DNA from: Adineta vaga
Lineage: Eukaryota; Animalia; Rotifera
NCBI GenBank assembly: GCA_021613535.1
Contig: CP075492.1
Location: forward strand, 16,678,001-16,742,000
DNA length: 64,000 bases
Direction of reading: 5' to 3'
A program made the translations under genes and the position numbers. Shown one piece after another: positions 2,083-41,923 of this stretch; the first letter of the stretch is position 1; the number at the start of each line of letters is the position of its first letter. The notes beneath the pieces are model-generated. The model was not told where the DNA came from. It worked only from the letters and a program-made list of their open reading frames with translations, and did no database searches.

Positions 2083-2142
2083 TTGAGGGTGTGGATTGGT
2101 GAGGGTGGGAATATATTCTCTCGACTCTCACCCACACCCTAA
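2083..2142. repeat. Telomere-like palindromic element, copy 1
   Basis: AGGGTGTGG (2086-2094) pairs with CCACACCCT (2132-2140); about 35 bp past the stop of the 2177..2815 gene. Confidence 0.85.
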
Positions 2143-2176
2143 AATATTTTATCGTATCAAGAATGATAACATATTT

Positions 2177-2815
2177 TCAGTTAAAGTTCAGCTCAATATT
2201 ACGAGAGTTCTTTGTTAACGTAACTACCGGTTGAGGACCTTGACCATTTAAATCCTTAATAACATCCATTCTCATTTGATAATAATCAGGTATTGTTGAT
2301 CCATACGGATAAATTTGAGAATGTGTATTCAACAGTGTTTTTCCTAAAACATAATATTCTGGACGATTTGGGAGTTGGGTTGTTTCTAAAAAATAACAGC
2401 AAACAAGTTTTTGATTAACATCATAAACTGACCATTGATACAATTTCATTAAGAAGGGATTGCATTGATAAAATGGAGTAGGGTGAAAATATTCATCTGC
2501 ATCAATATGATATGAACCAACATCAAATGCATCTCTAGCAAAACAAGTAACAATTTCTGGCCATAAATTTCCTAAAGAATTCTTTGTATGTTTTAATTTT
2601 GATATAATACGTTCAACATTTTCATGATCTTCAATAGTTTGTTTATCAGTAGTCGTAGATTTTGAAAGTTCAATCATATATTCTGCACTAACATTAAAAA
2701 TTAATAATATATTTTGTAATAATTCAATAGTAAATGTTTGAAATGTTTGTTTCCATTCTTCACACGCTTCATCCATAATACATAAAAGAAATTCTACATG
2801 AATTATTGATGACAT
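2177..2815 (-). CDS. Hypothetical protein, 212 aa
   Basis: Uninterrupted ATG-to-stop ORF with globular-protein composition; no motif recognised. Confidence 0.65.
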   Translation of the reverse strand: MSSIIHVEFLLCIMDEACEEWKQTFQTFTIELLQNILLIFNVSAEYMIELSKSTTTDKQTIEDHENVERIISKLKHTKNSLGNLWPEIVTCFARDAFDVGSYHIDADEYFHPTPFYQCNPFLMKLYQWSVYDVNQKLVCCYFLETTQLPNRPEYYVLGKTLLNTHSQIYPYGSTIPDYYQMRMDVIKDLNGQGPQPVVTLTKNSRNIELNFN

Positions 2816-3047
2816 TATGAATTTGTTTTAATGAAACTAAAATTTCTAAATTGAAATACGTAAAATATAAAGAATAGTTCAAATTAGTCATTTTTATATG
2901 ACAAAACTCTAACCGGAAAAGTCTTGTAAATCTAAGATTGATGGAACAAAAAAGGAAAGAAGAAAACCAACCACAAATAATAAATAAAGTTAGTGCCATA
3001 GCACGGCATCTGTTGATATTCTTAAACGAATAATTCTTCGTATGGTA

Positions 3048-3103
3048 TGAGGGCGTGGTTGTAAATATGGATATATATCCTTTCCTTACCCTCATTCACA
3101 CCC
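3048..3103. repeat. Telomere-like palindromic element, copy 2 (degenerate)
   Basis: TGAGGGCGTGGTTGT ... CCCTCATTCACACCC. Confidence 0.55.
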
Positions 3104-3352
3104 ATCCAAAGAAGTAAGAAGCCGGAATCCCTGTTATGGGCTTTTATTTTCCGGTAACATTCGTTTTGGGTATTCCGGAATTGATGGAAAGCTATTCCGA
3201 GTGGGAAGACAGTGCAGAAATGTGTAACTTTTGCGAATAGATAGTATTCTCTTCCGAAAAGCACCTATAGAATCGTTTTTTATGCAATTAGGTTTTTCTC
3301 TTATTGATATATGTAGATTGTCTAAATGGCAAAAAGTAAAAGAAAATTTCTA

Positions 3353-3772
3353 CTACATCGATTGTTGAGCTTTCTTAATAAGTTCATCCAATATTTGTCG
3401 GTATTTCGTTGAAGGTTGATGTGTATCAGAAGTAGTAACAGGTTTGCCATGTCCGAAGGCTTTATCGGCAAGTGAATAAGCATATTGAAAATATTTCAAT
3501 ACTAAATCAGGTTTATTATCTTCTAATAATTTTTTTCCATAATCAATTAAAACATTACTCATATCGCGACCAAGTCTTATCAACAAGTCTGTTTGATGAT
3601 CAAACATTTGTAGTTCTAATTCATCATTAATACATTCGATACTCCATTCACGTACCGCACAAACCAGATTATCAATTGAATCTGGTGGGACAGCCACTGT
3701 TTTTGCTAGATTTATTTGAAATCTTCTTCTCAATGATCGATTATTAGTTTGGAAACGAATATTCGCATCAAG
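3353..3772 (-). CDS. Terminal exon of an unknown helical (TPR-like) protein; upstream exons unresolved or degraded
   Basis: A TATTTAG acceptor at 3773 opens LDANIRFQTNNRSLRRRF... in frame with ORF 3353..3733. LKYFQYAYSLADKAFG is TPR-like. Confidence 0.45.
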   Translation of the reverse strand, partial: LDANIRFQTNNRSLRRRFQINLAKTVAVPPDSIDNLVCAVREWSIECINDELELQMFDHQTDLLIRLGRDMSNVLIDYGKKLLEDNKPDLVLKYFQYAYSLADKAFGHGKPVTTSDTHQPSTKYRQILDELIKKAQQSM

Positions 3773-4542
3773 CTAAATAATAGCATATCCATCACTGAAT
3801 ACTATTTCTGCCGAAATTTTTCGAATTGAATTGTTTATTCAATGAATAATTCGTACAAAAGAAATGGCGATAAAATATTTTTCTTCTTTAGTTTCCTTTG
3901 GAGAATTTTTTACATTGATTTATTCATTTCTTCGATACAGTTTGTCTGAAATCGGCAAGAATGGTATAAAGATGCATAATCGTATTGCATCGATAAATAC
4001 ATTTAGATTTCTTACAATACAGAAAAGAGCGTATCATAATTATGGATGACATTTGCGTAATTCGATTTTTTGACTTATGAAAATATATAACTGATGATTG
4101 CGTTTTATCAAAAATATTGATCAAAGGAAGTAGATAAGAACGATTAATCGATATGTCTCATCATGTTGATTTACATTGACTTTTTGGACAGAGACTCGCA
4201 AAAAAACAAGCAACGAAGTAAGCTATTTGAAATTTGATTTCATCGGTAATAAAGGTTACGTCAAAAATCAGTCACATAGATATCTGATTTTTGCTTTTCT
4301 CGTCCGTTTTGCTTCAATAAGCTAAATATCTGAGTACATAAATGGTTTAATTAACGGTTGGAAAAATATCAAGCATCTTCAGCTACTTCCTTTCGAAACA
4401 ATTATAAATATACGCATGTTGCGCGAGGGTTAATTGCTTGTTTTTTAAAACTATCTCTCTGTCACATACAAACTATTTGAAACACAGATAGATATCAAAA
4501 CTTCAAGTGATCAAAACATATTCCTGCAAGCAAAGATCTACA

Positions 4543-5370
4543 ATGTATATGAATCCTGGAATGTACTCCCAAAACTACTACTATCCTAGTTACAATGATC
4601 AGCTTAGAAAAGGATTGTATGGAGACCAAATGAATTCGAATTATGCTAATTCATGGCCGTCATACTATGCTCCAAATCAGCAACTACTCTACAACAATGG
4701 CATGTATATGCAAAACGCCGGATACTATCCTAGCGTAGATGGTTGGCGATTTAATATGAGTGGTTTAGACAGTAAGCCTGCAAATGGTATCGGTCGTACA
4801 AATCTGGAAGCAAGAGGAGGTAGATTATTAGAATTTATTATTAACTAAAGAAATTTTATCGCGAGAAGAAAAGAGAGAAAGTGCAAGTAAATCATTATTC
4901 TCCCATGAAGTATGCAGACATGTCTTTCTTTCTACTTGGCGTAGTATATGATAGGGAAAATAAACAATATTTCGAAAATATTTTCAGATGAGTAAGAACG
5001 ATCATTTTGCTTTGTTGATATAAGTTAGCAAGAATACTTTATTTAAGGAAACAATCGCCTTCCGCCTGGACGCATGCCTATGAATATGAGAACGCGTCGT
5101 GGAAACAATCAGGTTGGACCGATGATAGGTTTGATTCCTGGCATGATTGGTCCTGTACTTCGTGGTGCGATGGGAGGAGCTCGACCCTTAATTGGAGGAG
5201 TTGTCCGAGCTGGAATGAATAATGCTCTTCCTCGAGGTGGTGGTGGTGGTTTTAATTTGGGAGGAGTGTTCGAAAATTTACGTGATATCGCTGGTGGTGG
5301 GGGTGGTGGTGGTTTCGGAGATATGATCGGTGGTGGCTTGGGAGATATAGATATTGGTGGATTCATTTAA
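4543..5370 (+). CDS. Low-complexity protein: Y/N/Q/M-rich N-terminal half and Gly-rich C-terminal half (2 exons)
   Basis: ATG at 4543. A phase-1 intron 4820..5047 (GTAGAT...TTTAAG) joins ...LEARG to GNNRLPPGRMPMNMR... of ORF 5074..5370 in frame. Confidence 0.6.
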
Positions 5371-5953
5371 TATGATTTAACGCTGTTTCTTATTATCTTT
5401 TATGCTCCAATGTTAATTTCAATGGTCCATACCATGAAATTTATGTACTCTATTTTTGTTTTCCTCAATTACCTTATTTTTCTATTTTTCGTTCATTGAA
5501 ATTATTTATAGACTTTCTTTCCTATTGAGGAAGACGTTAATCTGCTTCGTTGAAGAATACTTTAGTTAGTTTATTTTCGTTTTATGATAAATAATCAGTA
5601 TATTCAATGTTTTCATAAATTCTCACATAATTAATTACCGGTCACAATTATGATTTGATTTCGTTGATTTTTTTCATCGTATTATACATTAGCATTTAGT
5701 TGAATGAAAATATTTTGTTCGCTCTATATGTTACAAAAATGCATTATATACCTTGAAAATTACGTTCGTTATGTACAAGGTGAATATACGTAAGATTTTA
5801 TCGTTTCTCATATTTATCGATTTGTTTTTTCGTTTCATTCTGTGTCATTATTTATATCTCAATGGTTCTACTTATGCTATCAAAATACAATAAAAACGAA
5901 ATACGTGTAAAAACAAAAGCATTGTTTTTATCATCGTAGATCAAATCACCATC

Positions 5954-6013
5954 TCGAGAGTGTGGCTGTGGCTGTGGGTTTACATCTTATTCTTATCCAT
6001 CAACACCCTCAAG
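5954..6013. repeat. Telomere-like palindromic element, copy 3
   Basis: GAGAGTGTGGCTGTGGCTGTGGG ... CAACACCCTCAAG. Confidence 0.7.
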
Positions 6014-6656
6014 ATATAATTTAAATCACTATACTTGATAATAGTTGAAAGCGATAGAAACAAACATAAAACTATTATCCATTTATGGTTGAAAATTTCA
6101 GTTATGACTCAATTGTTTTTAAAGATTGTAGATGCAAGATGGCTCTAAATCCAACAAATGTATCAGAAACGACGTCTTTATCATATCACTCGCCTGTTAT
6201 GATTCAATCGAATAAAGATTAGTTATTCATTTGAAATATCTTAGAATGTGACACGTCAGAAGGCCACGTACACACGCAAACGACTAAAACTCGATGGATC
6301 GAAGCACTGACAGAGATTCACTATGGTAGAGATTTTCCCATTCATTCACGATATTTTTAAAAGCTTTTAGGCTCCCGTTCAATATTTCAAACTTGTTTGG
6401 AGTCGGACTCCATATTTAGAAAACATTTTTTCTTCAGAGCCAGATTCAGACTCAGGCGTATGTATTGATTCGAATCTATCCTACGGTTTCTACAATTGAC
6501 AATGTCATGTGCACTTTCTACCTCAAATTTGCGTATACAGATGCCCCTCTGAAGTGTTGTGCGCGATAATATGAGAATAGTCATATTTTTTATCAGATCA
6601 TTTTTATTTGTATAAATTATCAAATGATATGATTTTCTTACTCTTTCTAAAAAAAT

Positions 6657-6697
6657 TGAGGGTGTGAGTCAGACTATACTTTTCACCCACACCCTCA
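6657..6697. repeat. Telomere-like palindromic element, copy 4
   Basis: Perfect 10-bp inverted repeat TGAGGGTGTG (6657-6666) / CACACCCTCA (6688-6697); about 60 bp past the stop at 6760. Confidence 0.9.
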
Positions 6698-6759
6698 TAC
6701 AAAAGGATGTCTGTCTGTTTTCTTAACACAGTTTTCCTTTCTCTCATAGATATCAATTT

Positions 6760-9336
6760 TTAATTTATTGGTATAACTTGAGTTGTTCGACGACGATTAC
6801 CAAAATGTTGACGTGTTTTCCAATAAATATTTAAACTATGCCAAGCAAATAATTTTAATCCAACAGTTAATCCACCATATAAACCAAGAAATGTTGTTAT
6901 TGTATATAAAATATTATTTCTTTCAACATGATTATATTCACATGAAGATGGTGAACAAGATGAATAATAATTCGAATAATTACTTGAATTTTGCCATGTT
7001 TCAACAAATAATTTATCGATCAATTCACCCAATGTTACAGATAATAATGGATTAAAACGAGTTGGTACAGATTGATTAAGAACATTTGGAAATTTAGTTG
7101 TTATATTGAAAAACTGAGCTAATTCATTTAAACATGTCGAATTATAAAAACATTCAAGTGTCGATTGACGAAGACCATCAATAGGTAAACAACCAAAAAC
7201 TATACCTACAAATATAAGAATATATAAATCTAGAAATTTTATTTAAATATATATATATATCTTACCTGGTATTCATATTGTTTGATTAAAAATTGTCAAT
7301 TGAGATCTGAAACATTGTGATGGTGATGTTGTACATAAACAAGATTGATTACTTTCATTAAACCATATAGGAAATGTTTCTATTATATTCCCCATTTGTT
7401 CATTTGATACAAAAGATTGCCAATTTAAATAAAATCTATGTTGTAATTGATTTGCATGAAACATATCAGTGATATAACGATGTATCCATTGAAATTGGGT
7501 CAATGTTTGAACAATGAAATCATCAACAGTTGAATCAATTTGTCTTTGAAATGAAGAATATGTTAATGTTTTAAGAGTAATAAATTGTTTTGTTGAAAAT
7601 GTTTCAATATTTTGTTTAATTATATTTCTTGTCAATGTACAAAATGATGATAAAGCATTAAAAAAACCACTTAGCGTTTTCCTATCATAGTTAAGTGTAT
7701 ATTCTGTTATGTCTTCCGTACCCCAAAGTATTGTAATAAAATCCAATGATATGAAGTTAGATGAACAAATTTGATGATAAGTTAATGATTGAATAGAAAC
7801 AAATGTTGAATATGAAATTGCAATGTTTGAACATGAACATGTTAATGTTGATGAATATTATTGAGATAATTGTTGATAAGTATCGAATGAAGGATTCTTT
7901 ATGATTACTGTATGAATTTGTGTTGAAATGAATGAATAAAAGATTAAAATAATTAAACCAACAGTTAAAAATAAAATATAAAAACGTGTTGAATAAATTC
8001 CATCTTTAATATCATTGGATAATGGAAACATATTATATGTTAGAACTTGTTGAAAAATAGTTCCATGAATGATTCTAAGACGATTTTTTAAAGCTAGAAA
8101 ATTTGAACAAAAAACTATAAATAAGAAGAAATAAAATCGTTCTTTTACTTTGATTTTCATTTCTTGGAATATTTATTATTGTTTGATTTCTACGAGAAAT
8201 TGATTTTTTTATTTTTCGTATTAATCGAATATTTATTGGTATAGAAAGAAATAAAATGACTTTTAATCCACCAAATAAACTAAATAAAGTAACAATAATG
8301 TATAATAGATTAAATGATTGAGTAAATGAATATGTGCACAATTTTGGAGAACAGATTTCATAATATTTGCTAAAATTATAAATTTCATTCCATGATTCAA
8401 TGAATAAATTATTTAATAAATCATTGATCGATGTTTCTGTCGAGTATCGAGATAATTTCAATGGTGAAAGTAAAGAAAATTCTGGAATAAATTTTTGAAG
8501 AGAATCCAAACATGATTGATCATAAAAACATTCAAATGTCGAAGTTAATAATGATTGATATGGATAACAACCAACTCGTGTATTTGGTAAAATAAACATC
8601 ACATGTGGATCATTATTCGTCGTATCAAATATCGAACTACCACCGATTCCTATTCGTCCAGTATCATTATAAATATAAGCTGGATATGTACATTTATCAT
8701 CTCTTCTACAAGTACAAGAACTCGATCCAGTTCCATACTGATTTGTTAGAACAGTAGTAACATCTGAGATTGATCGCATATAGAAATTACTACGTAATCC
8801 GGAAAGAATTCTATTATAAAAAGTATTGAACCAAATAAAATCATTGATATGTTTATAAGCAGTTATTGTATTTTGTTGAAATTGATTAATAAGTGTTGAT
8901 ATTTGACTTTGAAAGTTGTCAGAAGATAAAACTTGAATTGTGATTAAATATTGAGAAGAAAATTTTTGTAAAACATTGTCGATTTTTTCTTTTATCATTC
9001 GACAAAATATTTCAAGAAATTGAATATGTGATGAAATCATAAGACGATAATCGACTGGCCAATATTTACTGATACTTCTTTAGTTAATGATAAAAGAAAT
9101 GTTTGACGATATTTAATTGAAAGTTGGTTAAAAACATCTTCTGATGGTAAATCAATTGTGACAAGATTTGTTTGACCAATAAAACTAGTAGATAGAACTA
9201 TTATTAGAATTGAAAAGAATAAGAAAAGAGTGAATAATCTGGTTGAAATTAATTGATCCGTTTGTGATAAATTTTCATTTTCTGTATAGAGATTAAACTT
9301 TTTAATAAAATCACCGAGTTTTCTTACTCGATCCAT
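6760..9336 (-). pseudogene. Disabled membrane protein with two tandem TM/Cys-rich ectodomain/TM units
   Basis: The same motifs occur twice (STR-TM1, GCxP..STxECFY..C, FIESW/FVETW, YYxxCSPxxCxY, GGL-TM2). Lesions: frameshift with loss of the CxC...CSS block near 9040-9100, in-frame TAA at 7858-7860, in-frame TGA at 7273-7275. Introns near 8100-8150 and 7208-7265. Confidence 0.8.
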
Positions 9337-9709
9337 GGATATTTGGTTTTTTTATAATATAAAATAAAAGAAAAAAAAACTAAGAATATTTCTATTGTTA
9401 GGATTCGAGAATATTCTTTCCGAGATAGAAATTCATCTATTTAATTGTGTTTTTATTGAAATGTAAAAATAATTAGATTTTTATTTGTTTTAACGTTAAT
9501 AATTAATTATTTCATTTCTTATTTGCTCGAATTGTGAAGAAAATTAATTTTATATTTTAATAATTTATCTATATTAATGTCAGTTTATATTTTACATATG
9601 TAAAATGTTCTCAAAATGTATTTTGTTCACTGTTTTTCATGCAGTCCTTGACATATTTATACTCACAAAAAAAGAGTGTTTAAAAAAATCGAAGTCAAAT
9701 GACGACAGA

Positions 9710-11974
9710 TTAAAGAGCAGCAATTCCACCATATGTTGCTAAAACAAAGACATGATCATTATTTTGAGCAACAGCCAAATGTACATGAGATAAATGTGTA
9801 TAATCAAGAAACGAAAATTGATCAAATTTCACTGATGGGTATCCGCATTGACACGATGCATGGTTAAATCCTTGTATTTCTTTGGTTAATTTTTCAATAT
9901 TGACCTGATAAAGTGAAATGGGATTTTCTTGTGGAACTGATTTCTGAAGTGTACGAATACAGTCGCGTAAAAGAGAATCGTAACGTATATTCGATAATGC
10001 ATCATCTGGCAAACGTTCAACAGTTAATTGATGAGTATCAAAATCAAATATAAGATGATTGTAAATCTTAATCAAATCGTGAACTTTACTTATTTGATAA
10101 TCACACATACCACAATCACATAAATCACGAGCAACATGATCTTTTGCCAATAACATTCGAAATAGACTAGTACCGGATTGTTTTTCTGTTTGGTTTAACA
10201 AATTTTCTCGGTAACCTAGAATATCATCGCTAGCACAGCCCTCTTGACGGTAGCTGTATGTATAAGCACTCGGACAGTCGTCAACAAGTTTTTCCGTTCG
10301 ATCTTTAAGTGCGTGTCTTCGTTGCCAACCTAGAATATCTTGTTCATTAAAAGAATTTTTACATTCTCCTTCAGCATCTTCTCTAGTCGAGAAAGGCCAC
10401 TGAGGATCTTTTAATGTAAAATGAAGACACGGTAAAAGATCTTGTCCAATAAATTGTGATTGATGTCGATTTGTCATATATGTTCGATCAACACTTGAAT
10501 TTAAATCCATTGTTGGTTGACATCTATTTTCATCAATTCGTTTAACTCGATATAAAGAACCATAACAATTTCTATTATAAAATGCATCGGCTAATAATTT
10601 CTCCATATCGACCTCAGATACTTCTTGAGTATTTCTATCATATCGAACAATATATGTTGTTGAATCTTTCTGATGTCCTAATAGAAAGAAAGCATAAACA
10701 GCTGCAACACGACAACATTCGTTGATATGTTTATAGAAAAATTGAGCATCAGAAAACTGAAATAATGTTCGACTGCCATATTTTGCATGAATTGTAGGAA
10801 GAAATTTTGGTCGAAATGGATCTGTTTCTCTAGACTGCTTATCTTGAGCTTCCCAAACAAGTTTTAATAATTGAAATTGTGGATAAGCAAAAACTAAATT
10901 TCGAATATCTTGTTCATGAATAAATTTAAATATATGAAGCCAAATTTCTGGTGGAAATTGATCAATCAATGATGGTTCTTGTTTATCAATTGACTTATTC
11001 AATTTTAATTCAAGTAATCGTGGATAACAATATCGAATCGATAATGATCGTTCATATAATTCTCCTGTATCAGTTAGATTTTTAAATTGCTTAGAAACTT
11101 GACAATCTTCTAATTCATTTTGTTGTGCTTCACGAAAAAAATTTAAACATCCAAAATAATCTTCTTCTTCTTCTGGACAAACTGCAAATCCTAATGATTT
11201 TTCATTTCGTTTCACTAATATATCAGTTCGTAATACAAATCGTTGAATTGTATCATTCACTAGTTCAGGTGCTAGTGCTTCATGTAATAAATTATGTGTA
11301 AAGAGAACAGCATAACCTTTCTTTGGTTTGAATATAATACATTCATATCCATGTTCTAATCCATTATAAGCATTTATTTCTTCTTTTATTGTTAATCCTT
11401 TAATATTCGTTTTTGGGGATATTTTTGGAAAATAAAATTTTGTTTCACCTTTTTCATAGTTATCAGTTAAATAGATTAATAAACTAAATAATGATCGTTC
11501 ATCTCCACTTGGTGCATATTGAGCGTCTTTATGAGGTGTAAAATATTCGTCTCTATTATATTTATTTAATCTCATTGCTGTATTAATACCACTCATTTGC
11601 CAATTACCTTGAACATTGAAACCTAATGGTTTTGTATTTTCAACAAGTTTTGCTAATTTATTATCGAAATTCAAACGTTGCCAAAGTGTTTCAGCTAATT
11701 GATCATCCGTTACTATTAATCTGGAATTATTTCTCTGTTTAGTATTATATTTATTCGACATATTCTCAAATATTTCTCGATCCATATTAGTTACAATTTC
11801 ATCACATTCATTTGAAGACACGAAATTTTCTACTTCAATTAACATCAGATCATCTTGATGTTTAATTGTATTGATTTTGATATTATCGTTGATTTTTGTT
11901 GATGTATCATAATTTGTTAATAATGAAGCGGTAGTACCCAAATCAATATTACCCAGGAATTGATGTCGCGACAT
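9710..11974 (-). CDS. 2OG-Fe(II) oxygenase (prolyl-4-hydroxylase-like) fused to an F-box and an unknown C-terminal domain; intronless
   Basis: RLNKY...FTPHKDAQY (HxD), SLLIYL...GETKF, LLHEA (distal His), R in RFVLRTD; F-box-like LIDQFPPEIWLHIFKFIHEQDIRNL. Confidence 0.85.
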   Translation of the reverse strand: MSRHQFLGNIDLGTTASLLTNYDTSTKINDNIKINTIKHQDDLMLIEVENFVSSNECDEIVTNMDREIFENMSNKYNTKQRNNSRLIVTDDQLAETLWQRLNFDNKLAKLVENTKPLGFNVQGNWQMSGINTAMRLNKYNRDEYFTPHKDAQYAPSGDERSLFSLLIYLTDNYEKGETKFYFPKISPKTNIKGLTIKEEINAYNGLEHGYECIIFKPKKGYAVLFTHNLLHEALAPELVNDTIQRFVLRTDILVKRNEKSLGFAVCPEEEEDYFGCLNFFREAQQNELEDCQVSKQFKNLTDTGELYERSLSIRYCYPRLLELKLNKSIDKQEPSLIDQFPPEIWLHIFKFIHEQDIRNLVFAYPQFQLLKLVWEAQDKQSRETDPFRPKFLPTIHAKYGSRTLFQFSDAQFFYKHINECCRVAAVYAFFLLGHQKDSTTYIVRYDRNTQEVSEVDMEKLLADAFYNRNCYGSLYRVKRIDENRCQPTMDLNSSVDRTYMTNRHQSQFIGQDLLPCLHFTLKDPQWPFSTREDAEGECKNSFNEQDILGWQRRHALKDRTEKLVDDCPSAYTYSYRQEGCASDDILGYRENLLNQTEKQSGTSLFRMLLAKDHVARDLCDCGMCDYQISKVHDLIKIYNHLIFDFDTHQLTVERLPDDALSNIRYDSLLRDCIRTLQKSVPQENPISLYQVNIEKLTKEIQGFNHASCQCGYPSVKFDQFSFLDYTHLSHVHLAVAQNNDHVFVLATYGGIAAL

Positions 11975-12177
11975 AAATTTGTTTTTAAAACGATTTTATT
12001 TTTATCAAAAAATTGGTGTAATAGTAATTTTCTAATTCGGTCTGAGCAAATTTTGTTATTTGTGTATTGAATTATATGGACAATATATTGCACAATCAGT
12101 TGAGCAATTCGTTGCTACTCGACTTGTGTCATGATGAGAAGCGAATGTGGTAAGTTGTCCGCAGATGTCAGTAAATT

Positions 12178-12229
12178 ATGGGTGTGGGTGTGTGAATACA
12201 AGAGACCCTTATCCGCACCCACAGCCTCA
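12178..12229. repeat. Telomere-like palindromic element, copy 5
   Basis: ATGGGTGTGGGTGTGTG ... CCGCACCCACAGCCTCA; about 150 bp past the serpin stop. Confidence 0.8.
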
Positions 12230-12376
12230 CATCGAAGTTAAGATAATCAAATGGGGAAAATGTTTTATTTTTGTAAAGAATAAAACAAAAATCAAGAAGG
12301 ATAATTTTTTCTATTTTAAATCAATTCAAATATAGTGCGCGGGAATATTATCATTGTTTTATATATAAGTCTCGTG

Positions 12377-13779: not shown

Positions 13780-13992
13780 CTCTATAGAAGTGTTTTCGAG
13801 AATATCTAATGTAAAGAAAAACTAAAACCATCTTTTGTATCGTATTATGTGTCATCAAGTTGAAGATAATGTATCTTATATCGTTCTACTGGGTCATAAC
13901 ATTACTGGTAATGTCCTGTCATCAACAACATGTCAACAATGAAAGAAGCGAATAATTTTGATAATATTTCTTTGTAGTTATCAATCTTGAAT

Positions 13993-14990: not shown

Positions 14991-15967
14991 ACTTCATACA
15001 AGAGATAGTGAAAAATGATTTCCTTTTACTCTTTCTTCTTTTTAGAATGGATTAACACTGGAAATATGAATGTCGCGTGACATCATCATACAACATCAAT
15101 CTAATCAAATGAAATACTCGTCGAGAACTACAGAGATGTAAATGAGAGTTTTGGTGTATATCACCGACACATACATCCTGAAAAACATTCTTATCTTTTG
15201 AAATTTTTCTGTTTACATACACTATTCAATATGAAATCAATCTTTTTTTGTTACGGTTTTACTTTAAGGCATGGACACGCAATGATTCATTACTATGACA
15301 ATCTTTCTGAATTTGTTTTTCCACAGGAAGATGGTCATTCTCCACATATACTTATCATTTTCAACTGAAACTAAATTTTGTCAAGATAAAGAACGTGTCA
15401 CGTTCTAATTCTCGCTATTTTATACTTAAAGTATGCTTACTTTGCAAAAAAATATGCAGTGTGAATTTTTATGAATAAAAAGCAAACAAAATAAAATATT
15501 AACCCAATAAGTATCTTACTCAAATTTTCATATAACAGAAAAGAAGTTTTTTATGTTTAATTCCGAAAATACGCATAATCTACATACTTAGATTCAATTT
15601 TAGATAAATTAATCAATTCGATAGCGAGATTCTATAGCAACTGGCACACTTATTTCAAATATGATGGTATTTTTTGCAAATTGTATACATGACAAGGTCT
15701 GTATTAGTACAGAACATGATTTCTACGAGAAAGAGCTGGGCGAGGCTCCTGACGAGCGTTATTTGTTTCAGATAAACATTTTTTGGAATACGGTTTCATA
15801 TTTTATAGATGTCTATATCAATTAGTCGTGTCAAATCGTTTTTGATTACCAAAAATTAATTGCATTCTATATTTTTCACTCATTCTAACATCCGTGTCTT
15901 GGTCAGGAAGTGATTTTAGGCATTATCATTACCAAAGCAACAAGTACGATATGATTTTTTTTCTTTT

Positions 15968-25804: not shown

Positions 25805-25816
25805 TTCTTCATTAAT

Positions 25817-25877
25817 TTGGGTTGTGGATGCTAATGGGATTGCTTCGTACTGTATCTTTACTCACACTCACACCCTA
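25817..25877. repeat. Telomere-like palindromic element, copy 6 (degenerate)
   Basis: TTGGGTTGTGGATG ... CTCACACTCACACCCTA, immediately after the FG-GAP stop and between convergent genes. Confidence 0.6.
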
Positions 25878-26007
25878 CAACATTTTTGCCCATATTTATT
25901 AATAATTTATTAGCTTGAATAAAATATGTGGAAAATTAAAATTGTAAGAAAAAAATCTCAAAAGTGAGTTAAATATTCGTCATCTTTAGAAATCATAGAT
26001 AATTGTT

Positions 26008-26573: not shown

Positions 26574-26870
26574 CTGTATTAATATCGAATAATAATAAAA
26601 TATTTTATTACGGCAAATGAATCTGTTGTCGAACGTTACATTTAACAAAAACTAGCATTAAAATGTATTTTCAAAAATCTAGATTTCTTGTGCTATTATG
26701 AAACTTAAGATTTTTCTATTTTCATACAATATAAAGATCGCTATCAAGCGAGAATAATTTCATTGCTTTTTTTATAAAATAAATCAATTTTTAAGCTAGT
26801 CGAAAGATTCACTGCTCCCTTCTGTAAAATAAAGAACAGTTTTATATTCGCACTATTCTAGTTTTTCATC

Positions 26871-26911
26871 TTGAGGGTGGGCGTGGCCGATCATCTACAC
26901 CCACACCCTCA
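26871..26911. repeat. Telomere-like palindromic element, copy 7
   Basis: TTGAGGGTGGGCGTGG ... CTACACCCACACCCTCA; about 100 bp past the stop at 27008. Confidence 0.85.
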
Positions 26912-27007
26912 CACATTTTGTCTATCTATTAGGCAAGCTTAATATAGAAGAAATATGTCTGTCATCGATTTATACGTCAATAAGTAATAAGACGAGACAA
27001 ATAAAAA

Positions 27008-30517: not shown

Positions 30518-33089
30518 ATGGCACAAAACAAATGTTGTTCTCTTTCATGCTTTGGACGACCAACAGTAGGTGAAACAATACATGTATACACTCACTATAA
30601 TTTTTTATATGTAGCATGATTCTCCAGTTAGATATCTTGAACAGTCACAAAAATTGCCATTAAATGAAGATACAATAGTTAAGCCACTTCAAATGCAACT
30701 AAATACCCTTCAAGTCGAACGATATAGGCAATTTTTCAGAGAATCGTCACCACCATCGACGGAACAAGTTAATCAAACTTTTGTCTTAGAATTTACTGAG
30801 TCGTTAACCGTCTTAGTTGGCCCAAATAATTCAGGAAAATCAAGTCTATTGAAAGCATTAGAGTTGTTCTGTAAAGCTGTCAGGCAAGGAAGTGGTACTT
30901 ATGATCATAAACAAACAAAAGAACTGCTTGGTATTGACGAAGATCTATCCGAAGTTATCTTGCAGGGCACTTTTACAGTTCATTATCAAGGTTCACCTAA
31001 GACAAAAAGGTTAGTACTGAAAGTAGTGCTAATTAAGTCAAATCTTACCGCTGAAAATATTGAATTGCATGTGCAACCTGGAAAACAGCATAGGAAAGAA
31101 AAGACTACTGTAAGTGTCATAGTGATAGAACCATCATCAAATGATATCGATGGAATCAATATGCAACAGCTTTGTTCTTCGTGTTATACTGATTATGATA
31201 TATTCCGAGATTTATTTCCACAAGTTGTATCACTCAATACCAAGAGTATTTTTAATTGCTCGCTAGATGATCTATTCAAGCAAATTCCAAACATTCGAAA
31301 ACGACGACATGAGATCAATGAGGAAATAAGCAAAATTTTTCCTTCTTTTCGACTTGATTATAAAGAAGAAATTCTTGCCAAACAAGATTCTTCCTTGGCG
31401 TGTTTCCTAGAAGAAAATGTAGATTTAGAAGAATTCGGTATCCCATTATTAACTACAGGCTCAAAAATAACAATCGGAAATGAAATTATTAACCAAAGAC
31501 TAGACACAACGACTCGTTGTAGTGAGGGTGTACTAAAATGCTTATCCATGATTATAGCCATATGTTGCGCAGATCCCCATTCAATTGTTATCATTGATGA
31601 GCCCGATGCTCATGTGTTTCCAAATGCACAACAACAATTAATCAAATATTTTTATCACAGAATGGCAGACCTTCGACGTTCGAATTTATTCTGCCAGATG
31701 ATTATTACCACACACTCAACTGATATCATGCAAGCAGCCAAAATAGAACATATTCGACAAATATTTGTCAATCCAAGCGATGATAGACCAATTGGCATTC
31801 GATCTTTGGCTGGAACTCGTCATTTATTCGAAGCAATGGGTAGTCTGGGAATGTCTCTTTTGAGTCATGGAGAGTTTGTTCGTTTGGGTGTGCATAAAAA
31901 AGTTTTAATTCTCGAAAATCGCAGTGATTATGATTTCTTACGTGGCTTGATAAATCGAAGCAAACCAGCTTTACTGAATTCTTCGTTTACAGTGATAGAT
32001 AAACGTGGATGAACGAATCCAACTGAAATTGAAAAATTCATACACTTATTTCGGCAACTCTTACCAGACGAAGCGACATTGTACCTCTTTATTCTGGTCG
32101 ATGCGGATTTGAGGGAGAAAAGCACGTTGCAACAAGAAACAGAACTGTACAATGATCTAGAAAAACAAACATCTTTACATGTTGAACTAGGATATCATTG
32201 CTGGGACGCTCGTGAATGGAAAAATTGGTTACTTTTCAATGAAGATCTACTTTTTGAGATATTATATGACAAGGATATGTATCTTAAAGATCCAAATATC
32301 AGACAACTTCGACATCAAATACGAACGCATCGTTCAGGAGAATCCATTTTCGCTGCAGATGAATACTCTCAGCAGCACTCGTCTACAAAGAGAAGAGAAT
32401 TATTTAACTCATGGTTGGACATAGAACTGCAACGTCATTTTCAAATATTATTAACAGATCTAAACATTAGCCAGATGCAAGGTATTGAACGTATCGATAC
32501 TAGAGAAGAAATGAAATCACAAGATGAGATGTGTATACAATTTTTAAAGCGCAAAAATATTGACGATGATACTATGAATAAATTCCACCCTCATACCAAG
32601 AAGATTAAAGCAGTGATTGGTGAAGAATTACGAAAGAAAAGTGGGGATTACAAACAACAACAAGAAGAAAATAAACGACAACAGCGAGCCTATTCAAAGA
32701 TAGAAAATCGAGCAAAACAAAACCAGCCGAGTACGGCCATCAATAAAACCAATAAAAATACAAAAAGAAACGAAGAACAAATGCGTCAGGATTGGTTAAA
32801 AGAACGAGATCTACCAGCAAAACCGAAAGATATAAATAGAAATATCAGGCAGGCAGCAACCAAATGGATTGATGCGAAATTATTTTTTCAACATTTAACA
32901 TCTGGCATGAATAGTGGAAAGGCCAGGGGTTTGGATAATCATTGGAAAGCAGTGTTTGCAATGGGAGACTCAGAAGATAATCTATTTGAACGATATTTTC
33001 ATACACTTGATCCCCAAAATCTACAGTTATGGCCACAAGATTTCGATCGCTTACTCGAAAAATTCGAAAGATTTGTGAAAGAATCATAA
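30518..33089 (+). pseudogene. OLD/GajA-like ABC-ATPase + TOPRIM nuclease with one in-frame TGA (pseudogene or read-through)
   Basis: Walker A GPNNSGKS, signature-like CSEG, Walker B IIDEPDAH, H-loop IITTHS; TOPRIM motifs VLILENRSD and FILVDAD. ORFs 30654..32012 and 32079..33089 are in the same frame, separated only by TGA 32010-32012. A 5' exon 30518..30565 is followed by a 49-nt intron 30566..30614. Confidence 0.8.
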
Positions 33090-33351
33090 TATCTTAATCA
33101 AAAATTTTTCCATCGAAGTTTACCAAATCACTGCATTAATATCAATCTATATACTAAAAAGCGAAAAACAAAGCAAATACTCTCTAGTTTCACTCTAGAT
33201 TAGTGTAGTGTGATATTTCTAATAAAGTAGATTGTTTATCACATGTTTTTATTTAAATTCATTAGGTATGCCAAACTGCATCTATCTACTTAAACCACAG
33301 ATTATTTCCACATGAATTGTTCACTCGTTAATATATACTTGTACGATCTTG

Positions 33352-33396
33352 TGGGTGTGGGTATATCTTCGTCACTTACATCTACACCCACACCCA
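33352..33396. repeat. Telomere-like palindromic element, copy 8
   Basis: Perfect 11-bp inverted repeat TGGGTGTGGGT (33352-33362) / ACCCACACCCA (33386-33396). Confidence 0.9.
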
Positions 33397-33613
33397 AAAA
33401 ATTGAAATCTCTCTATTCTATTTATTATTTATCGGTTTGATCACTTACGATGATCATAGGAACGTTTAGAACAATTTGTCTTGCTGCAATCAATTACAGC
33501 ACTTTCCATTATAATTGGCATCATTGTGATAAAAAATACAATGAGTAAGTACTTCATGATTTTTTCAGAAAATTAATGGATTGATCGATAATGCATACAC
33601 AATTATTTAACAG

Positions 33614-33670
33614 TCTTGAGGGTGTGGATGTGGGGATACCAAGATAATACCGACACCCACACTCTTAAGA
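33614..33670. repeat. Telomere-like palindromic element, copy 9
   Basis: TCTTGAGGGTGTGGATGTGGGG ... GACACCCACACTCTTAAGA. Confidence 0.88.
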
Positions 33671-34410
33671 GCGCAATTATTGTGTGAGAATGAATATCTC
33701 AATTCCTTTCACTTCCGTGTAACGAATCACATCAGTGAGGAAATATTCCCAAGACATATCAAATAAGTTACCCAGAATCCGGTTAAATCTTAACTACCTT
33801 CTGTCTCGTACTCTCCTCGGTTTCGTCGAATCCTTCTCGATTGTTTTCTATGAGTGGAAAAAAGTGTCACAAACAGTTTGGTGACGTTAGCTATAACACA
33901 GATTCAATGTATATCGAACAGACAAATATTATTCTTTATATAAGCAGATGTGTGACTCATGTACCAGTAGTCTTTAAAAAAAAAGTAACTACAACAGAAC
34001 AAACTGAATACTGATATGAAGTAAAAACTTGGAAAAAACCCAAAATAAAATAAAAATCTAAGAAGAAAAGATTGAGAGAGCAGAGTATAAAAAGTTTGAC
34101 CTCTACTTGCATACTTCGTTATCAAGCAAATTCAAGATAAAATCGAAGACAATTTATCAAAAAGTGAGTTAGACTTTTTGATTTTTCATTTAGACTAAAA
34201 AACGTTTGTTTCACCAGCAACTATATTTTTACTTTTTAATAAACCTTCATCTTATTTTCCTTGAGACATAATACTTTCATTATGCTTCTATCTTTCGATT
34301 ACTATCAAATCGAATATTCTATTACCCTCTCAATCAATATTTCCCATTAACTTTTTATGCTAAATTTTTACAGAATTATAGTTTTCTAGATATATTGGTT
34401 GACTTGATCA

Positions 34411-35382
34411 ATGACTTCATCAGTTCGTACTACGAATGATCGAAATCTGTTAGTAGCTGGCATATCTGCGATTCTAGATATCCCTCTACAATCATCATCA
34501 CCTGTTAATCAATCTGTAAAACCAACAAAAGTTTCACTATCAGATTATCATCGTAAAACATATTCCTACGGTCAAGTAGGTAATACACTTATGGATTTGA
34601 GAACATCTTCAACGAGAAATTCCAGAAATAAAGTGAATCAACAGATAGAATTATATACAAAAACGTTGACTGGACAAGATATAACAGTTCAGGTAGACTC
34701 GGACGGAACTACCGATGATGTCAGAAATGCGTTACAGATTACGAACAGTGTAGCGACCAATCAATCCAGTGTCATATTTGCCGGTAAGCAATTGAAGAAC
34801 GGAAGACAATTGAGTGGATATGGAATACAAGATAAATGTACTGTTCACGTTGTACCTCACTTACAAGATGGAAGTCCAACAATTTTGGATCCTGAAAGCA
34901 TGGATCCACAATATGATCATGACTTCTCAACCACTAAAGATAATAACAAAGTATTTACGAGAGGTTCAATCAAATATGTTCGGCCTTGTGGATGGAAACG
35001 TTTTGCAATTAAAGTATCCGATAAATTTGAGAATATGATCTGGTTAGGCCAGAGTAACAGTGAAGGCGAATGGCCTGTGTCATATCATGGAACTGGTTTT
35101 CATCAAGATAGAAGTATTGCAATGGACGGTTATGATTTAACAAAAGGAAAAAAATTTACATTTACATATGGTGTATATTCAACGCCAGACATAGAAGTAG
35201 CTGAGAAATATGGTGTCAAGTTCTCATATGGCAATGAACGATATTTAATTCTATTTCAGAATCGTGTGAATCCTCAAACATTAATGAAACTATCAGCTGA
35301 CAACAACGGTATGGGTGAATATTGGGTGAGCCCTACAGACAAAGATATTCGCCCGTACGCAGTTTGTATCCGAAAACTTTAA
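34411..35382 (+). CDS. Ubiquitin-like domain fused to a PARP-like (H-Y-E type) ADP-ribosyltransferase domain
   Basis: Ubiquitin-like KTLTGQDITVQV...VIFAGKQLKNGRQLSGYGIQ; ART motifs WPVSYHGT, GVYSTPDIEVAEKY, QNRVNP, EYW, DIRPYAVCIRK. Confidence 0.85.
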   Translation: MTSSVRTTNDRNLLVAGISAILDIPLQSSSPVNQSVKPTKVSLSDYHRKTYSYGQVGNTLMDLRTSSTRNSRNKVNQQIELYTKTLTGQDITVQVDSDGTTDDVRNALQITNSVATNQSSVIFAGKQLKNGRQLSGYGIQDKCTVHVVPHLQDGSPTILDPESMDPQYDHDFSTTKDNNKVFTRGSIKYVRPCGWKRFAIKVSDKFENMIWLGQSNSEGEWPVSYHGTGFHQDRSIAMDGYDLTKGKKFTFTYGVYSTPDIEVAEKYGVKFSYGNERYLILFQNRVNPQTLMKLSADNNGMGEYWVSPTDKDIRPYAVCIRKL

Positions 35383-36521
35383 ATAGCATATTTATTCGCT
35401 TTAAATAAATGCATCTTCAAAATACAGACTAAAAAGATACTTATAAATTTAAAAAACAAACTATCTATTCATATTCTTTTCTTATGATTATTGCAACTGT
35501 TGAATGAAAAATAGGATATTGTATTGTAGGTATAGCATCGTTTATTACTTGTGATGTTTATCATGTTAATTCACGAAGTGTTTTATGTGGTTGTTGTAAT
35601 ACAGAATTATGTAATTCAATTGGTCATCTTTCATCACTAATGATCAGGGGAATTGTTCTTTCTCATTTTTAAGCAATAAAAGATGTTGATTATAAAATAG
35701 AAATATTCATTTAACTTATAGAGAATTCTCTCTTCTCTTATCTTGATTTTTGCAGATCGCTGTAAAGACTTTTTGCAAGTTTATTGGTCTGTCATATGCT
35801 TTGTTTATAAAAGAAAGGAACATTAATATGCTTGTAACAGCTAGCTTGTATGAAAATTTTAGGCTGACTGGACCAAAAATGAACGGTTTAGACATATGAA
35901 AGATTAGTTGTTATTTATGTAAAAAAGAAAAGTTTTGAAACTGAATAAAATTCATGTCACACTTGATCTACATCTCTACCCAACAAAACCTCAAGCATGA
36001 CTAACAAATAACCAACTAAAAATTACCACATTTTGAATTAGTCACGTTCTTTTTTCTTATATTTATCCTCAAAATTTTATAACTTCTATATCTCTCAAGT
36101 AAAGTTTGTCTAAAGACTCTTTCACGATAGAAATTGAAAAACATAAATATATCCTTTTGAATACAAATAGAAGGGAATGGATGGTGTTTTTTCTTCTCAA
36201 TTTAATTGATTTTTTATCACATAAAAGGTGACTCTTACTTCTTTTTATGATCAAATAATTACAGACAGACCTTTTGAATATGATCTATTGATTTTTGAAA
36301 ACATATTTTCAAGTATGAAATATCAAATTGATTAAAATAACGAATATTTTAAAAGAAAAAACCTTGAATCAATATGTAAACAGAATTCTAATTAGAAAAA
36401 CACATTAATCAACCCATTATATTATAATGACATTTACGTATATTATACTCATTTATTTTCTACTTTCTTTCTGACAAGGAAAAACATATTCAGCGAGTAT
36501 TAACTTGTGTTTAACAAAAAA

Positions 36522-37125
36522 ATGCTTGGATATCGACAACCTCGACCATACGGTCGTCCACCAATTGGTTATGGAGGAAGATTAACAAATATTGATTATA
36601 AATGGAAAGCACTTTGGCCATTTCTTGTCTCGATAATTATTGGTGCTTTGATTATATTATGTGGACTTCTTGTTTTCGTTTTAGAAATTGCAGATTTAGG
36701 TCTTCTTGGTAAAATTGGTTTAACTCCAAGTCTCTATGCAGCTGCAGTTGGAATTTGGTGTGGAATATTTATTATAATTGCTGGTGTTTGCATTGTTCTT
36801 ATTAGTAAATAATATATAAGATATTCATAATGCGAATTTTTCTTTATATAATTTAGGTTGTATGAAAAATGTTCGTCGATGGGCATTTATTGCATTTTGT
36901 TTAACTATTGCTGCTACTGTTTTTGCAATTATTGATTTTGCAGTCAATGCTGCAAGAGTTGATGATTTAAGATCAGCTGGTTGGTTTGATAGTATTTATA
37001 CAGATTATAAAAGTGTAGCTGGATTAATAGCGGCACAACTTGCATTTGGTATCGTTGCATTTCTTCTCTGTCTTGCCTTTATTGGTGTTTATATCTATAT
37101 GTACTTCAAAATTAAAAAACGTTGA
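36522..37125 (+). CDS. Four-TM (MS4A/CD20-like) membrane protein, 2 exons
   Basis: Four hydrophobic helices and GIWCGIF; a 52-nt intron 36805..36856 joins the two ORFs in frame. Confidence 0.8.
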
Positions 37126-37821
37126 TCAAATCTAATGAACAATCACAAGACATGAATTTTTTCTCGTTTCATTTATTCATAATTTTCTCTAGTTTAATAA
37201 ATGAAACAAATAGAATTAATTATTTCGGTAAAAGATATAATCTCTAATGCCGCTGTCAATTATGAATTGGTTTATATCATTAATGAGAGCGTGATCATCA
37301 AAGAATATGATAATTATTACTGAAAATAAAATCTTTCGGACAAAGAGTACCTAAAAATATAATTGGAATTTTTAGTCAAATGATTTTCCAAGGAATTTAT
37401 TAATTAGAAAGATATTTTCTTCAAAATAAATACTTTTTTTTTCATATCAAACAACTGACTTAAGCCTTCCTGCCCTCCTTCATACTCAAAATTCATACAA
37501 CGTAAAATGAGAAATAGACTAACTGATAGAAAAAAAAAACTTCCTATTACCCCGCATTCTGAGATGCTCTGTTAAACGTCGGTTAATCGAGCTGAAAATT
37601 TTTATCAAGTCCCAATATATGCTCCTATAATTTTAACCTATTTCGCCATTAATTACTAAAGTTATATTCTTTGAAATCTATATCTTCAATCTAAGAAAAC
37701 GTCATTCAAAAATAAAAATAGATGTTGTAATTATCTAAAAAGTACATTGTTCTCTTTCATAATCTCACTTATATAGTCTTGAAAAGAGAACCGATCTTCT
37801 CATTTTTCTATTGATATATTC

Positions 37822-38799
37822 ATGGAGAAGAATGATGAAATGTCAAGAATCTTAGATGCTAAATTCTCGATTATGGTTATCTTATTAAGTATATCTATTC
37901 CATGTTCAATTTGTATTTTTATTTATTTCTATCAACTACGAAAGAAAATTTCAATTCATCAACATTTATTAACTTTTATATTAGTTCTTTTCTGTTTCTT
38001 GGATATGATCATTAATTATCTAATTGCTTTGTATCAGAACCGAAACCAAAGAGTTATTTCTGAAACATCAAGTTTTTGTGCATGGTGGAACTGGTGGGCT
38101 TATTCATTAACTATTGCATTAGTATGGGTTGTTGCTTGTGGTTCAATTGAACGACATTTACTTATATTTCATAATACTCTTATAGCAACACGAAAAAGAC
38201 GATTCTTTCTTCATATTCTACCAATGTTAACTGCAATTACTTACTCTTACACATTCTATTTCATTGTCATTACTTTCCATTCATGTGAAGACTATTGGGA
38301 TTATAAATCTGTAAGTTCTATGAAGCTCTTCTAAATTATTTCTACATTGATGCATTTTATTATTTTTCCTTAGCTACTTTGTCTTTTACCATGTTTTATA
38401 TACAGTGAACCTACAGTTGCATTATATGATTTTGTAATGCATACAATAATGCCATTAAGCATAATAACTGTAGCCAATGTCGCTTTAATTGTTCGAGTAT
38501 TAATGCAAAAAAAGAATCAACAAAGAGATTGGCAACGAAAATGGAAATTAGCGATATATCTTATATTAATTGCTATCTTTTTTATGATTACTTGGTATCC
38601 ATTAGCAATCAATAGTATTATCTATATGTATACATCATCATCAGTATCGACGAATTTACAAATGAAATATTTCTTTTCCCTTCCGAGTTTATTAGAAATG
38701 ATACTTCCGATCGTTTCATTATTTTTTCTACCAAATTTTAAAAAAACAGTTTTTAGATTCCGACAAATCACTATTATCCCGCAAGCTTTTAATCGTTAG
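37822..38799 (+). CDS. Rhodopsin-like (class A) GPCR, 2 exons
   Basis: Seven TM segments, SIERH at the end of TM3 and WYP in TM6; intron 38311..38373 preserves the frame. Confidence 0.88.
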
Positions 38800-38827
38800 A
38801 CATATAGCCAGCTAGAAGAGGTTAGAT

Positions 38828-38893
38828 TTGAGGGTGTGAGTGTGAATGTAGGTACTTCTTCTTTAGCTTCACCTACATCCACCCGCACCCACA
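38828..38893. repeat. Telomere-like palindromic element, copy 10
   Basis: TTGAGGGTGTGAGTGTGAATGTAGGT ... ACCTACATCCACCCGCACCCACA; about 30 bp past the GPCR stop. Confidence 0.85.
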
Positions 38894-39364
38894 ATCAATA
38901 GATTTTGTAAATGTTGTAAGACGTCATCAAATTCTGGATATGTGATTAACAGTATTATTATACTTATTTATTTTGGATCTATCAATGAATGTTATTTTCA
39001 TCAATCAGTATGCCTACTGATCATTGACGCAAATAGAAGAGTCATAAACCTAGTACTTTAATTTTTGTGAAGAAAAGAAAAAAAGAAAAGAAAAAGAACT
39101 ACTATATATATTATTAATATAAACATTATAACATGTGAGTGGAGAGACCACTTTTTTCTCTTATAATATATTAAAAGGAAATTATACACTTTTATTACAC
39201 AAGCTAAATATAAAATATCTACGTCATACTGATATATGTACTCATTAATATTTATTTCTTTGACGTCAATATTCAATCTTAATCAAGAAGAAAAGCCTAT
39301 AAATACTCGAATATTTACATTAGAAAATAACATACACATTTTAGCATAAACTTACACAATAGCA

Positions 39365-39650
39365 ATGTCTTCTTCTCAACAACAACAACAACAAAGTCCA
39401 TATCCTCGTAAGTTAATGTCGACAAAGATGTATATGTAATATGACAATACTGATTATTTATTTTGTTTAATATTTTCTAGCTCCAGATTATGGTTCTGAT
39501 CGTTGGCAAACTGATCCTTTCAATCTTGCTCCAGCAGCTAACGCAAAACCGTTCGATAATGGCAGGGGAAACGGTCAACAAACATCACACAAAGAACAAA
39601 CTTATACTCTTCCCGGTGGTACTACGACGTATACCGAATGGAGTGGTTAA
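39365..39650 (+). CDS. 70-aa hydrophilic microprotein (2 exons; not in the ORF track)
   Basis: Exons 39365..39407 and 39481..39650 are joined across GTAAGT...TTTCTAG: MSSSQQQQQQSPYPPPDYGSDRWQTDPFNLAPAANAKPFDNGRGNGQQTSHKEQTYTLPGGTTTYTEWSG*. A TATAAA-like sequence lies near 39298. Confidence 0.75.
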
Positions 39651-40132
39651 TATAAGCCATGATTTCAAATTTTATATAAACGATGAACGAATTTTTGTAG
39701 CTAGTTTCGTTTTGTTACATGAAATAAATTGTATTGGACATTTTTCGATATAAAAATCATTATTTCATCAAAATAGATGTTGAAATGAATTGTATAAAGA
39801 ATGTTTTTGAAGGTGATGATTTTTTGTAGCGAACAGCCTAAATGTATTCTGAAAAATTGGGTGTTTGTGCTGCTTACATAGATAAATAACATTTTAACAA
39901 TTGCGATCATCAATCTAATAATAATAATAATAAAAGTTTTAGATATGATATTCTAAATTTTATCATCTAAGAATAGAGATGCATTCTGATAAGACCTATG
40001 CTGACACATTGTCATTTTTTTCTGATAGTAGAAGATGCATGTCATAGTTACGTTTTATATTAAAAAGCAAAGTAAGTGTTAGCTCGAGAATGAGTAGAGA
40101 TTGAAGGGGCAGTTAAAAAAAAGTCATTTCAG

Positions 40133-41430
40133 ATGAAGAAATTGATTAAAGTGTTCAGTCAAATTCTATTGCTACTCGTTTTCATTCCGTCAATAAAATT
40201 TACACATGCAATAGTTAATTACAAGTTAACATCAGTTATGATGGATTCTACAGGTAATTTATCATTGTGGGTTGGCAAACGTCAGGCAAGTATCGACATT
40301 TACACTGATTGGTGTGATAATTCATTGGATTCATTTTTTGATCTTGAGATGAATAGTGTATGGAATCGTAGTATGATCCCATTCATAACATGGGAAATAA
40401 CTCTTTGTAATCATACTAATGCAGACGATCCAGGAATAACGATAAGAATTAATAACAATAGTTATGATCCATACATTAATAAATTTGGTGATCGTATGAA
40501 AAATTGGTTGGCTGGTCCGGATGGTATTTATGGAACTAACGACGATAGACGAGCATTTGTACGACTAGGTATGAAATCACATAGTCTACACTTAGTCTTT
40601 ATTTGTCATAGGAAAGTAGTATTTGACATTAGTACTATATAGACATCCATCAAACCCGAAATATTCCTTTCGTATATAGAAAAAGATGTAGCTAGCAGTC
40701 TTTGAGCAGAAAACATATTTCAAACTTCTTCCGATTTGATATTTTAGGTCATGAAATGAATGGAAATTGGTATTCGTGGTCAAAAGGTTCCATTCCAAAC
40801 AATTTTGTTTTGGCATGGCGTCATACTTATAATATATTATTAAATAAAGGTATAAATGCAACGCGACTTCAATGGGTTTGGAGTGTAGCGAGTAGAGACT
40901 ATGGTCAATATACTGCAGAAGATTATTGGGTTGGAGAAAATTATACAGATTGGATAGGAATTAATGTATTTAATGCAGGTTCAAGTACTAATGAGAGTAA
41001 ATGGGAATGGCCAAATGAAATCCTTAATAATATGATAGGTCGATTCAACAAATTATCATCAACAAAACCGATCTCTATGAATGCATATGCAACAGTTGGT
41101 GTACGAACAGGAAATACTACAGATGTGCAGTCAAAAAATGAATGGTTGCGTCAAATGTGTGATTATATAAATAACAATAATATTAAAATGGCCTCTTATT
41201 ATAATGTTGATCAACCCACTCAGGATAATATGGTATTTGGTGGTACACATGGTGATGTTATTTGGAATAATTATAAGGGATATTCAGCCTATAGAAACTG
41301 TTTACAGACTAATGATTGGATAGAACCAAATATGAGTAATCCAAGACTTATTACTGATAAACAATTTGCGGGCATATTCTCAAGCTCAAGTGATATATAC
41401 ATTTTAAAGAATCAAGATACTCTAAAATAG
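40133..41430 (+). CDS. Secreted glycoside hydrolase family 26 (beta-mannanase-like), bacterial type, 1 intron
   Basis: Signal peptide, IPFITWE, FVRLG|HEMNGNWYSW, WVWS, YWVGENYTDWIGI, KPI; intron 40569..40747. Confidence 0.88.
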
Positions 41431-41590
41431 TCATGATTTCGTCATTGTTTTTTGTCTTTATGAGAATGTGATTATGCAATCAAGTTTAATATTCCATTCA
41501 TTTTCAAGAAATTTGAATTATATCTTAGCACTTAAATACATGATTAAAGAAAAGATCACAATAATGAATAAGTAAAGTAAAGATTTTTTC

Positions 41591-41642
41591 TTGAGGGTGT
41601 GGGTATTGATGAGTTATCTATACTTACACCCACACCCTCCAA
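41591..41642. repeat. Telomere-like palindromic element, copy 11
   Basis: Perfect 12-bp inverted repeat GAGGGTGTGGGT (41593-41604) / ACCCACACCCTC (41628-41639). Confidence 0.92.
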
Positions 41643-41863
41643 TTTGTGAATTAATTTCTGATCAATTTCCCAATATATTTCGTATTATTTCTCATGAATT
41701 ATCTATAAATCGAATTATTGCTCATAATCATAAAAAAATCAATTCATTTTAGAAGTACACAATATTGAAACTTATAAAAATTGTTTAGATAATTCAATGA
41801 TGGAAATTAAACCATATAGTATTGTTATTGATCCTGAAACGATGGATATTCATGCGGAAAATC

Positions 41864-41923
41864 GAGGGTATGGGTGTGGGTATCTCTTCTTCTTTCATAC
41901 CCACACCTGCACCCACAACCCTA
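41864..41923. repeat. Telomere-like palindromic element, copy 12
   Basis: GAGGGTATGGGTGTGGGTAT ... ATACCCACACCTGCACCCACAACCCT; inner perfect 11-bp inverted repeat. Confidence 0.88.

Follow-up and report, generated by a model that had tools for sequence, protein, structure and literature searches.

The question raised by this locus is what its short palindromes are. The locus is a stretch of 64,000 nucleotides of chromosome 3 of the bdelloid rotifer Adineta vaga (C3:16,678,001-16,742,000, referred to in full as the window), and each palindrome consists of head-to-head hexamers resembling telomere repeats, with a spacer between the two arms. We think that each element is probably a seam at which two unrelated broken ends, each capped with telomere repeats, were joined via a short linker. 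The seams are likely to record gene reshuffling near chromosome ends, and we favour describing the elements as repair joints capped by telomerase, with copied spacers, that form an abundant and apparently undescribed family. An earlier note on the same DNA had given telomerase-healed breaks rejoined end to end as the third of its options, and this is the one favoured by the position of the elements at joints, by a leader at the start of each arm and by the reading frames that elements cut.

Elements of the window

The earlier note had reported 12 elements, and all of them are found (12/12), with lengths of 42-67 bp. The G-rich arm comes first in 12 of the 12, as had been said; block-shuffled windows gave no such arrangement (0), and the reverse arrangement was also absent (0). 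The features are listed by position in the window.

2083..2143: seam element; homology to C3:18.43 Mb begins 3 bp to the right, and the paralogue there is without the element
3047..3106: decayed seam element; left homology stops 4 bp before it and right homology begins 12 bp after it
5949..6012: seam element with a CCATC leader; paralogue L072 continues without an element
6656..6698: seam element; its spacer family recurs beside unrelated flanks (L014, and loose ends in run X12)
12176..12230: seam element; on the left, the paralogue (L057) continues without an element
about 15142..15184: decayed 13th element, a sequence match that the first reading had missed
25817..25880: decayed seam element between convergent genes; right homology begins 3 bp after it
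26871..26912: seam element with a CATC leader; no homologous flank found
33349..33399: seam element; its spacer family has 93 near-copies, spread over all six chromosomes
33616..33668: seam element, the second of a pair with 33349; the pair encloses a 216-bp piece of unknown origin
38828..38894: seam element, 29 bp past a stop codon
41591..41641: seam element; a captured fragment lies to its right
41642..41861: captured fragment of 220 bp; it matches C1:14.643 Mb, and both ends of the match are at arms
41862..41924: seam element that breaks the open frame of the captured fragment

Not everything in the first description stands. The arm continues outward into a truncated leader that was absent from its consensus, and the half-sites that it placed near 50810 and 58090 are weak matches that we do not confirm. 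The spacers do differ among the window elements, but they are not unique and can be grouped in families. The elements are intergenic as claimed, except that the one at 41862 breaks an open, coding-like fragment. Likewise the position just past a stop codon holds for one side of most elements, at 13-260 bp, but the opposite side is usually a gene start, at 150-770 bp (distances derived from open reading frames). A generic inverted-repeat search was of no use, as AT-rich chance pairs drowned the signal.

An independent contig of 2013 covers 2972-6886 with one difference, and the three elements in that interval are therefore not assembly artefacts. This contig has about half the depth of those at 1500-2572, which hints at a haplotype without the stretch, although contig depth is unreliable. 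To the right of the element at 3047, the segment window:3118-3253 includes a piece of 90-130 bp with at least 6 copies near chromosome ends.

Elements at rearrangement joints

The position of the elements was compared with homology blocks in the genome (100.8 Mb in six contigs). A block ends within 15 bp or less on the flank side at 10 of the 24 element edges, against 1.3 for random positions and 0.5 under an intergenic-only null, and none of 20,000 trials reached 10 edges. Base-level comparison shows that at 2143, 5954 and 12176 the paralogues continue without the element, into sequence unlike the other flank in the window. At 12230 and 3047 the paralogues do have an element at this edge, but its spacer is a different one; that on the left of 3047 is decayed, and that on the right of 12230 (L046) has a different left neighbour. 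The gene on the left at 25817 has a 95% identical copy whose match ends 8 bp before the element, and the captured fragment at 41642-41861 lacks about 350 bp from the interior of its counterpart at C1:14.643 Mb. The converse is seen elsewhere: L055, L065 and L068 have elements that cut reading frames of which the window has an uninterrupted copy, and in L003 two elements enclose a coding piece of about 100 bp that is TPR-like as read from its sequence.

Some edges are reused with a new partner and a new spacer (L046, L056). Such reuse, with gene-sized modules between elements, inverted identical spacers flanking modules and a form common to two bdelloid families, would also suit dedicated recognition sites for cassette exchange or programmed breakage, integron-like or like nematode elimination. 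We consider this highly unlikely, as new edges lie at arbitrary sites, inside genes too, the outer boundary is ragged and the number of repeats varies; no enzyme was identified, and ordinary recombination between arms can explain the reuse of edges.

No empty site was seen among the A. vaga loci compared, where paralogues match one flank only, and there is no target-site duplication at the element edges (p=0.27). There is no correlation between the two arms, and changes away from the consensus affect one arm in 107 cases and are compensatory in 7. Together these results argue against both a miniature inverted-repeat transposable element (MITE), remnants of which the earlier note had proposed to check for, and a hairpin maintained by selection. 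An old MITE-like family inserting as a unit in or near breaks would account for the inverted arms, the spacer families and the high copy number, but the ends are ragged and lone arms are common, and with no duplication and no empty site we find it very improbable.

We give as little credit to a selected bidirectional 3'-end hairpin, or a boundary of paired sites for a telomere protein, which the earlier note had offered as punctuation like that of bacterial repetitive extragenic palindromes (REP). Most elements do lie within 260 bp of a stop codon on one side, and 9 of 10 fold better than shuffles. However the folding follows from the inverted arms, the low share of compensatory changes does not suit a conserved stem, paralogous genes are usually without the element, and elsewhere elements cut reading frames. 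A secondary use of this kind is possible at some loci; the RNA data consist of sparse contigs, none of them over any element.

The leader and telomerase

The telomere repeat of A. vaga is TGTGGG (PMC8494291), which bears out the link to telomeres that the earlier note had drawn for the hexamers. The arms have a further feature that points to telomerase: each opens with a variably truncated, nested leader (..CCATCTTGA). Outside TGAGGG the leader reads ACCATCT, and its matches are nested and not scattered. At least 5 letters are kept in 28/93 arms where 9.9 are expected (p<0.0002), and seven letters in 10/93 where 0.9 are expected. By hand tally of 100 listed long-leader arms, the C strand has GATGG in 91, followed by T in 55 of the 91; a second T follows in 33 of the 55 GATGGT arms, G in 9 of those, and T in 7 of the 9. 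The leader fades gradually over these four further letters and has no fixed end. It is also the start of most of the long pure telomere runs that begin in the register tested (TGA in 28/42, TTGA in 24/42 and ATCTTGA in 10/42, again tallied by hand), and so is not confined to the hairpins. L017 has the leader and a long pure run without a spacer or second arm, and two tails of Athena elements are attached to caps that bear the leader.

The C-strand arm reads as a 1.5-repeat template, CCCACACCC, and then TCAAGATGGTT. This would be the order of a telomerase RNA if raw ends pair 3' of the alignment region, and it fits arms that are first-cycle telomerase copies of the RNA 3' of the template. On this basis the predicted telomerase RNA would have UCAAGAUGG 3' of its template, and its layout would be the 1.5-repeat template followed by UCAAGAUGGUU. 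The elements thus appear to spell out part of a bdelloid telomerase RNA. To our knowledge no telomerase RNA has been found in rotifers. The arms with the longest leaders, at C1:1346888, C1:16809064 and C3:16815193, are subtelomeric with no clear opposite arm within 60 bp, and any of them may be the telomerase RNA locus or else a decayed element. There is a precedent in Xenopus, where TERC-ITS, a class of interstitial telomeric sequence (ITS), have been explained by copying of RNA downstream of the telomerase template (PMC8537989).

Spacers and their source

Spacers resemble each other beyond shuffles, and flanks do not: 23 spacer pairs score 14 or more against 0.3, although residual arm letters in long copies make up part of this excess. 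For the spacer of 33349, the 93 relatives differ by 2 mismatches or fewer, with 0 in the control, and sub-variants of the family cluster locally. Spacer families occur with unrelated flanks, and neighbouring elements may carry the same spacer inverted (identical in L003, similar in L048). That spacers fall into families means that they were copied from somewhere. Read-through past the 5' template boundary was considered as the source and rejected, as there is no common inner junction. The elements have no match in Rfam.

Another possible source is the Athena/Terminon retroelements. A. vaga has dozens of hammerhead motifs followed by C-rich repeats, which are Athena/Terminon ends of many families, and the reverse transcriptase of these elements might write the spacer, and perhaps the leader, from the short tail of RNA that runs from the site of hammerhead cleavage to the C-rich repeats, and then jump to the second end. 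The 10-30 nt pyrimidine-rich linkers in these tails are of a size and composition that suit the spacers, and two of the tails, as noted, adjoin leader-bearing runs. However, by eye none of the tails listed has a window spacer, the 93-copy spacer included, though the sources may be extinct, and no hammerhead lies beside C-rich repeats in the window or in the A. vaga element loci examined. The tails are also diverse where the leader is uniform, and short shared words are at chance level. We regard this origin as unlikely.

Abundance and occurrence in other rotifers

Exact two-arm matches number 77 in the genome against 0 in the control, and there are 0 of reverse polarity genome-wide. Exact 13-nt arms number 538+572 (1,110) against 2+1 (3) in the control, and crowd toward chromosome ends. 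As only 1 of the approximately 26 arms of the window is exact, the genome probably has elements in the thousands. Lone arms are common. At C1:188.8 kb (L001:1310-1680) an element forms the centre of an inverted duplication that extends beyond it (109 bp, 95% identical), which is what one would expect from the joining of two capped sister ends.

Nine AT-rich metagenome contigs from three related samples, presumably of bog moss, have elements of the same form with a leader nearer to CTATCT; one of the contigs encodes a protein for which Didymodactylos provides the sole named relative. In Rotaria sordida, one contig contains at least 7 elements in 24.6 kb, and their arms are longer and have different letters ahead of AGGG. 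The matches in viral contigs and 9 of the 18 metagenome matches were GC-rich chance hairpins and not elements, and none were present in the short Didymodactylos and Logan contigs. Judged by sequence, the architecture is common to Rotaria and the rotifer-like bog contigs, with leaders that differ.

Proposed mechanism

We suggest that the elements arise as follows. Subtelomeric DNA would break at arbitrary places, also inside genes; the positions are as observed and the cause is presumed. Telomerase would then, as the leader strongly suggests, cap each raw end, pairing at a variable site just 3' of the RNA template, with the first cycle writing a variably truncated leader and one TGAGGG and later cycles one to several TGTGGG. 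Because both capped ends would carry G-rich overhangs, which cannot pair, a copying step is needed. Here we are more tentative: one capped end may be extended by copying from an existing element, across its spacer and far arm, or from a similar short RNA, so turn C-rich, and anneal to the other capped end. Unrelated DNA would be joined and spacer families propagated in this way. Joints that leave coding sequence and promoters intact would finally be retained by selection, which would explain why the elements are intergenic and nearer 3' ends.

A wider proposal, which we consider possible but somewhat doubtful, is that this is routine repair in bdelloids: telomerase tags any free end, and short self-propagating spacer adaptors join tagged ends regardless of origin. 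The process would build the gene mosaics near chromosome ends and be one of the main ways by which foreign genes enter, and the sequence of the telomerase RNA could be read from the tags.

Several points weigh against repair by capping and joining. TERT has been reported absent from A. vaga (PMC5405514). We find a match to the TERT RNA-binding domain at C2:6094386-6094754 (-), of 83.5 bits and above the Pfam cut-off, which is at odds with that published loss and favours capping by telomerase, but the match holds one internal stop, an intron or an error. The RNA origin of the leader is deduced from the arms, and the copying of spacers from existing elements is the weaker part of the case. For 12 of the 24 edges there was no homologous flank to compare, the homology comparison covering window positions 1-14000 and 24000-43500, which make up two thirds of the region with elements. 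No element of recent formation was observed.

The uptake of foreign genes and the rebuilding of chromosomes after desiccation are a long-standing question in bdelloids, and the seams bear on both. They would provide a countable and datable footprint of end-joining, and the leader predicts about 20 nt of a telomerase RNA.

Other genes in the window

The genes of the window encode NACHT, FG-GAP, TPR, Kelch and NHL domains, a mix typical of subtelomeres. Between the elements at 26871 and 33349 is a gene for an OLD/GajA-like AAA ATPase (window:30654-33089), the relatives of which are first bdelloid and then bacterial; its Rotaria relatives also have telomere-repeat stretches around them. The gene at window:42695-44869 encodes an ADP-ribosyltransferase-like domain and, after it, TPR repeats.

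Relationship to known systems

Bacterial REP/REPIN sequences and eukaryotic MITEs are short, dispersed and mostly intergenic inverted repeats that occur in families. The A. vaga elements differ from both in having no target duplication, no empty site that we could find, ragged ends and a position at rearrangement joints. MITEs have fixed inverted ends, whereas the arms here are inverted with outer ends that are nested and ragged.

Athena/Terminon elements attach to G-rich overhangs via C-rich repeats and have a short linker beside the repeats (PMC8557442, PMC5537684). The elements described here have a second arm, no hammerhead, no coding part and, by eye, no exact spacer match to them.

Telomere repeats are known at deletion breakpoints in A. 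vaga (PMC13564844), and bdelloid subtelomeres are known to have short stretches of telomere repeat (PMC2861651, PMC7943196). These neotelomeres and stretches share with the elements the repeat, the regions and the addition of telomeres at breaks. The passages of these papers that deal with them (PMC13564844, PMC2861651, PMC7943196) describe single-ended additions or repeat density, and the two-arm joint, the leader and the spacer families are absent from those passages. The two-arm family is apparently undescribed in the literature, although papers of the Arkhipova group may hold an earlier notice of it.

ITS formed by fusion join two pre-existing chromosome ends, whereas the flanks here consist of internal gene DNA that was cut at new sites. 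Type C TERC-ITS of Xenopus are closer (PMC8537989). They too are found at a repaired break and consist of telomere repeats head to head, with the G strand before the C strand. The sequence that precedes them has been attributed to RNA downstream of the template, with telomerase acting on both ends, as we propose for A. vaga. The head-to-head form was seen at 3/41 vertebrate loci, as an insertion into an empty site, whereas the A. vaga paralogues compared match one flank only. In A. vaga there are probably thousands of elements, which join unrelated ends and have a nested leader on both arms and spacers in families.

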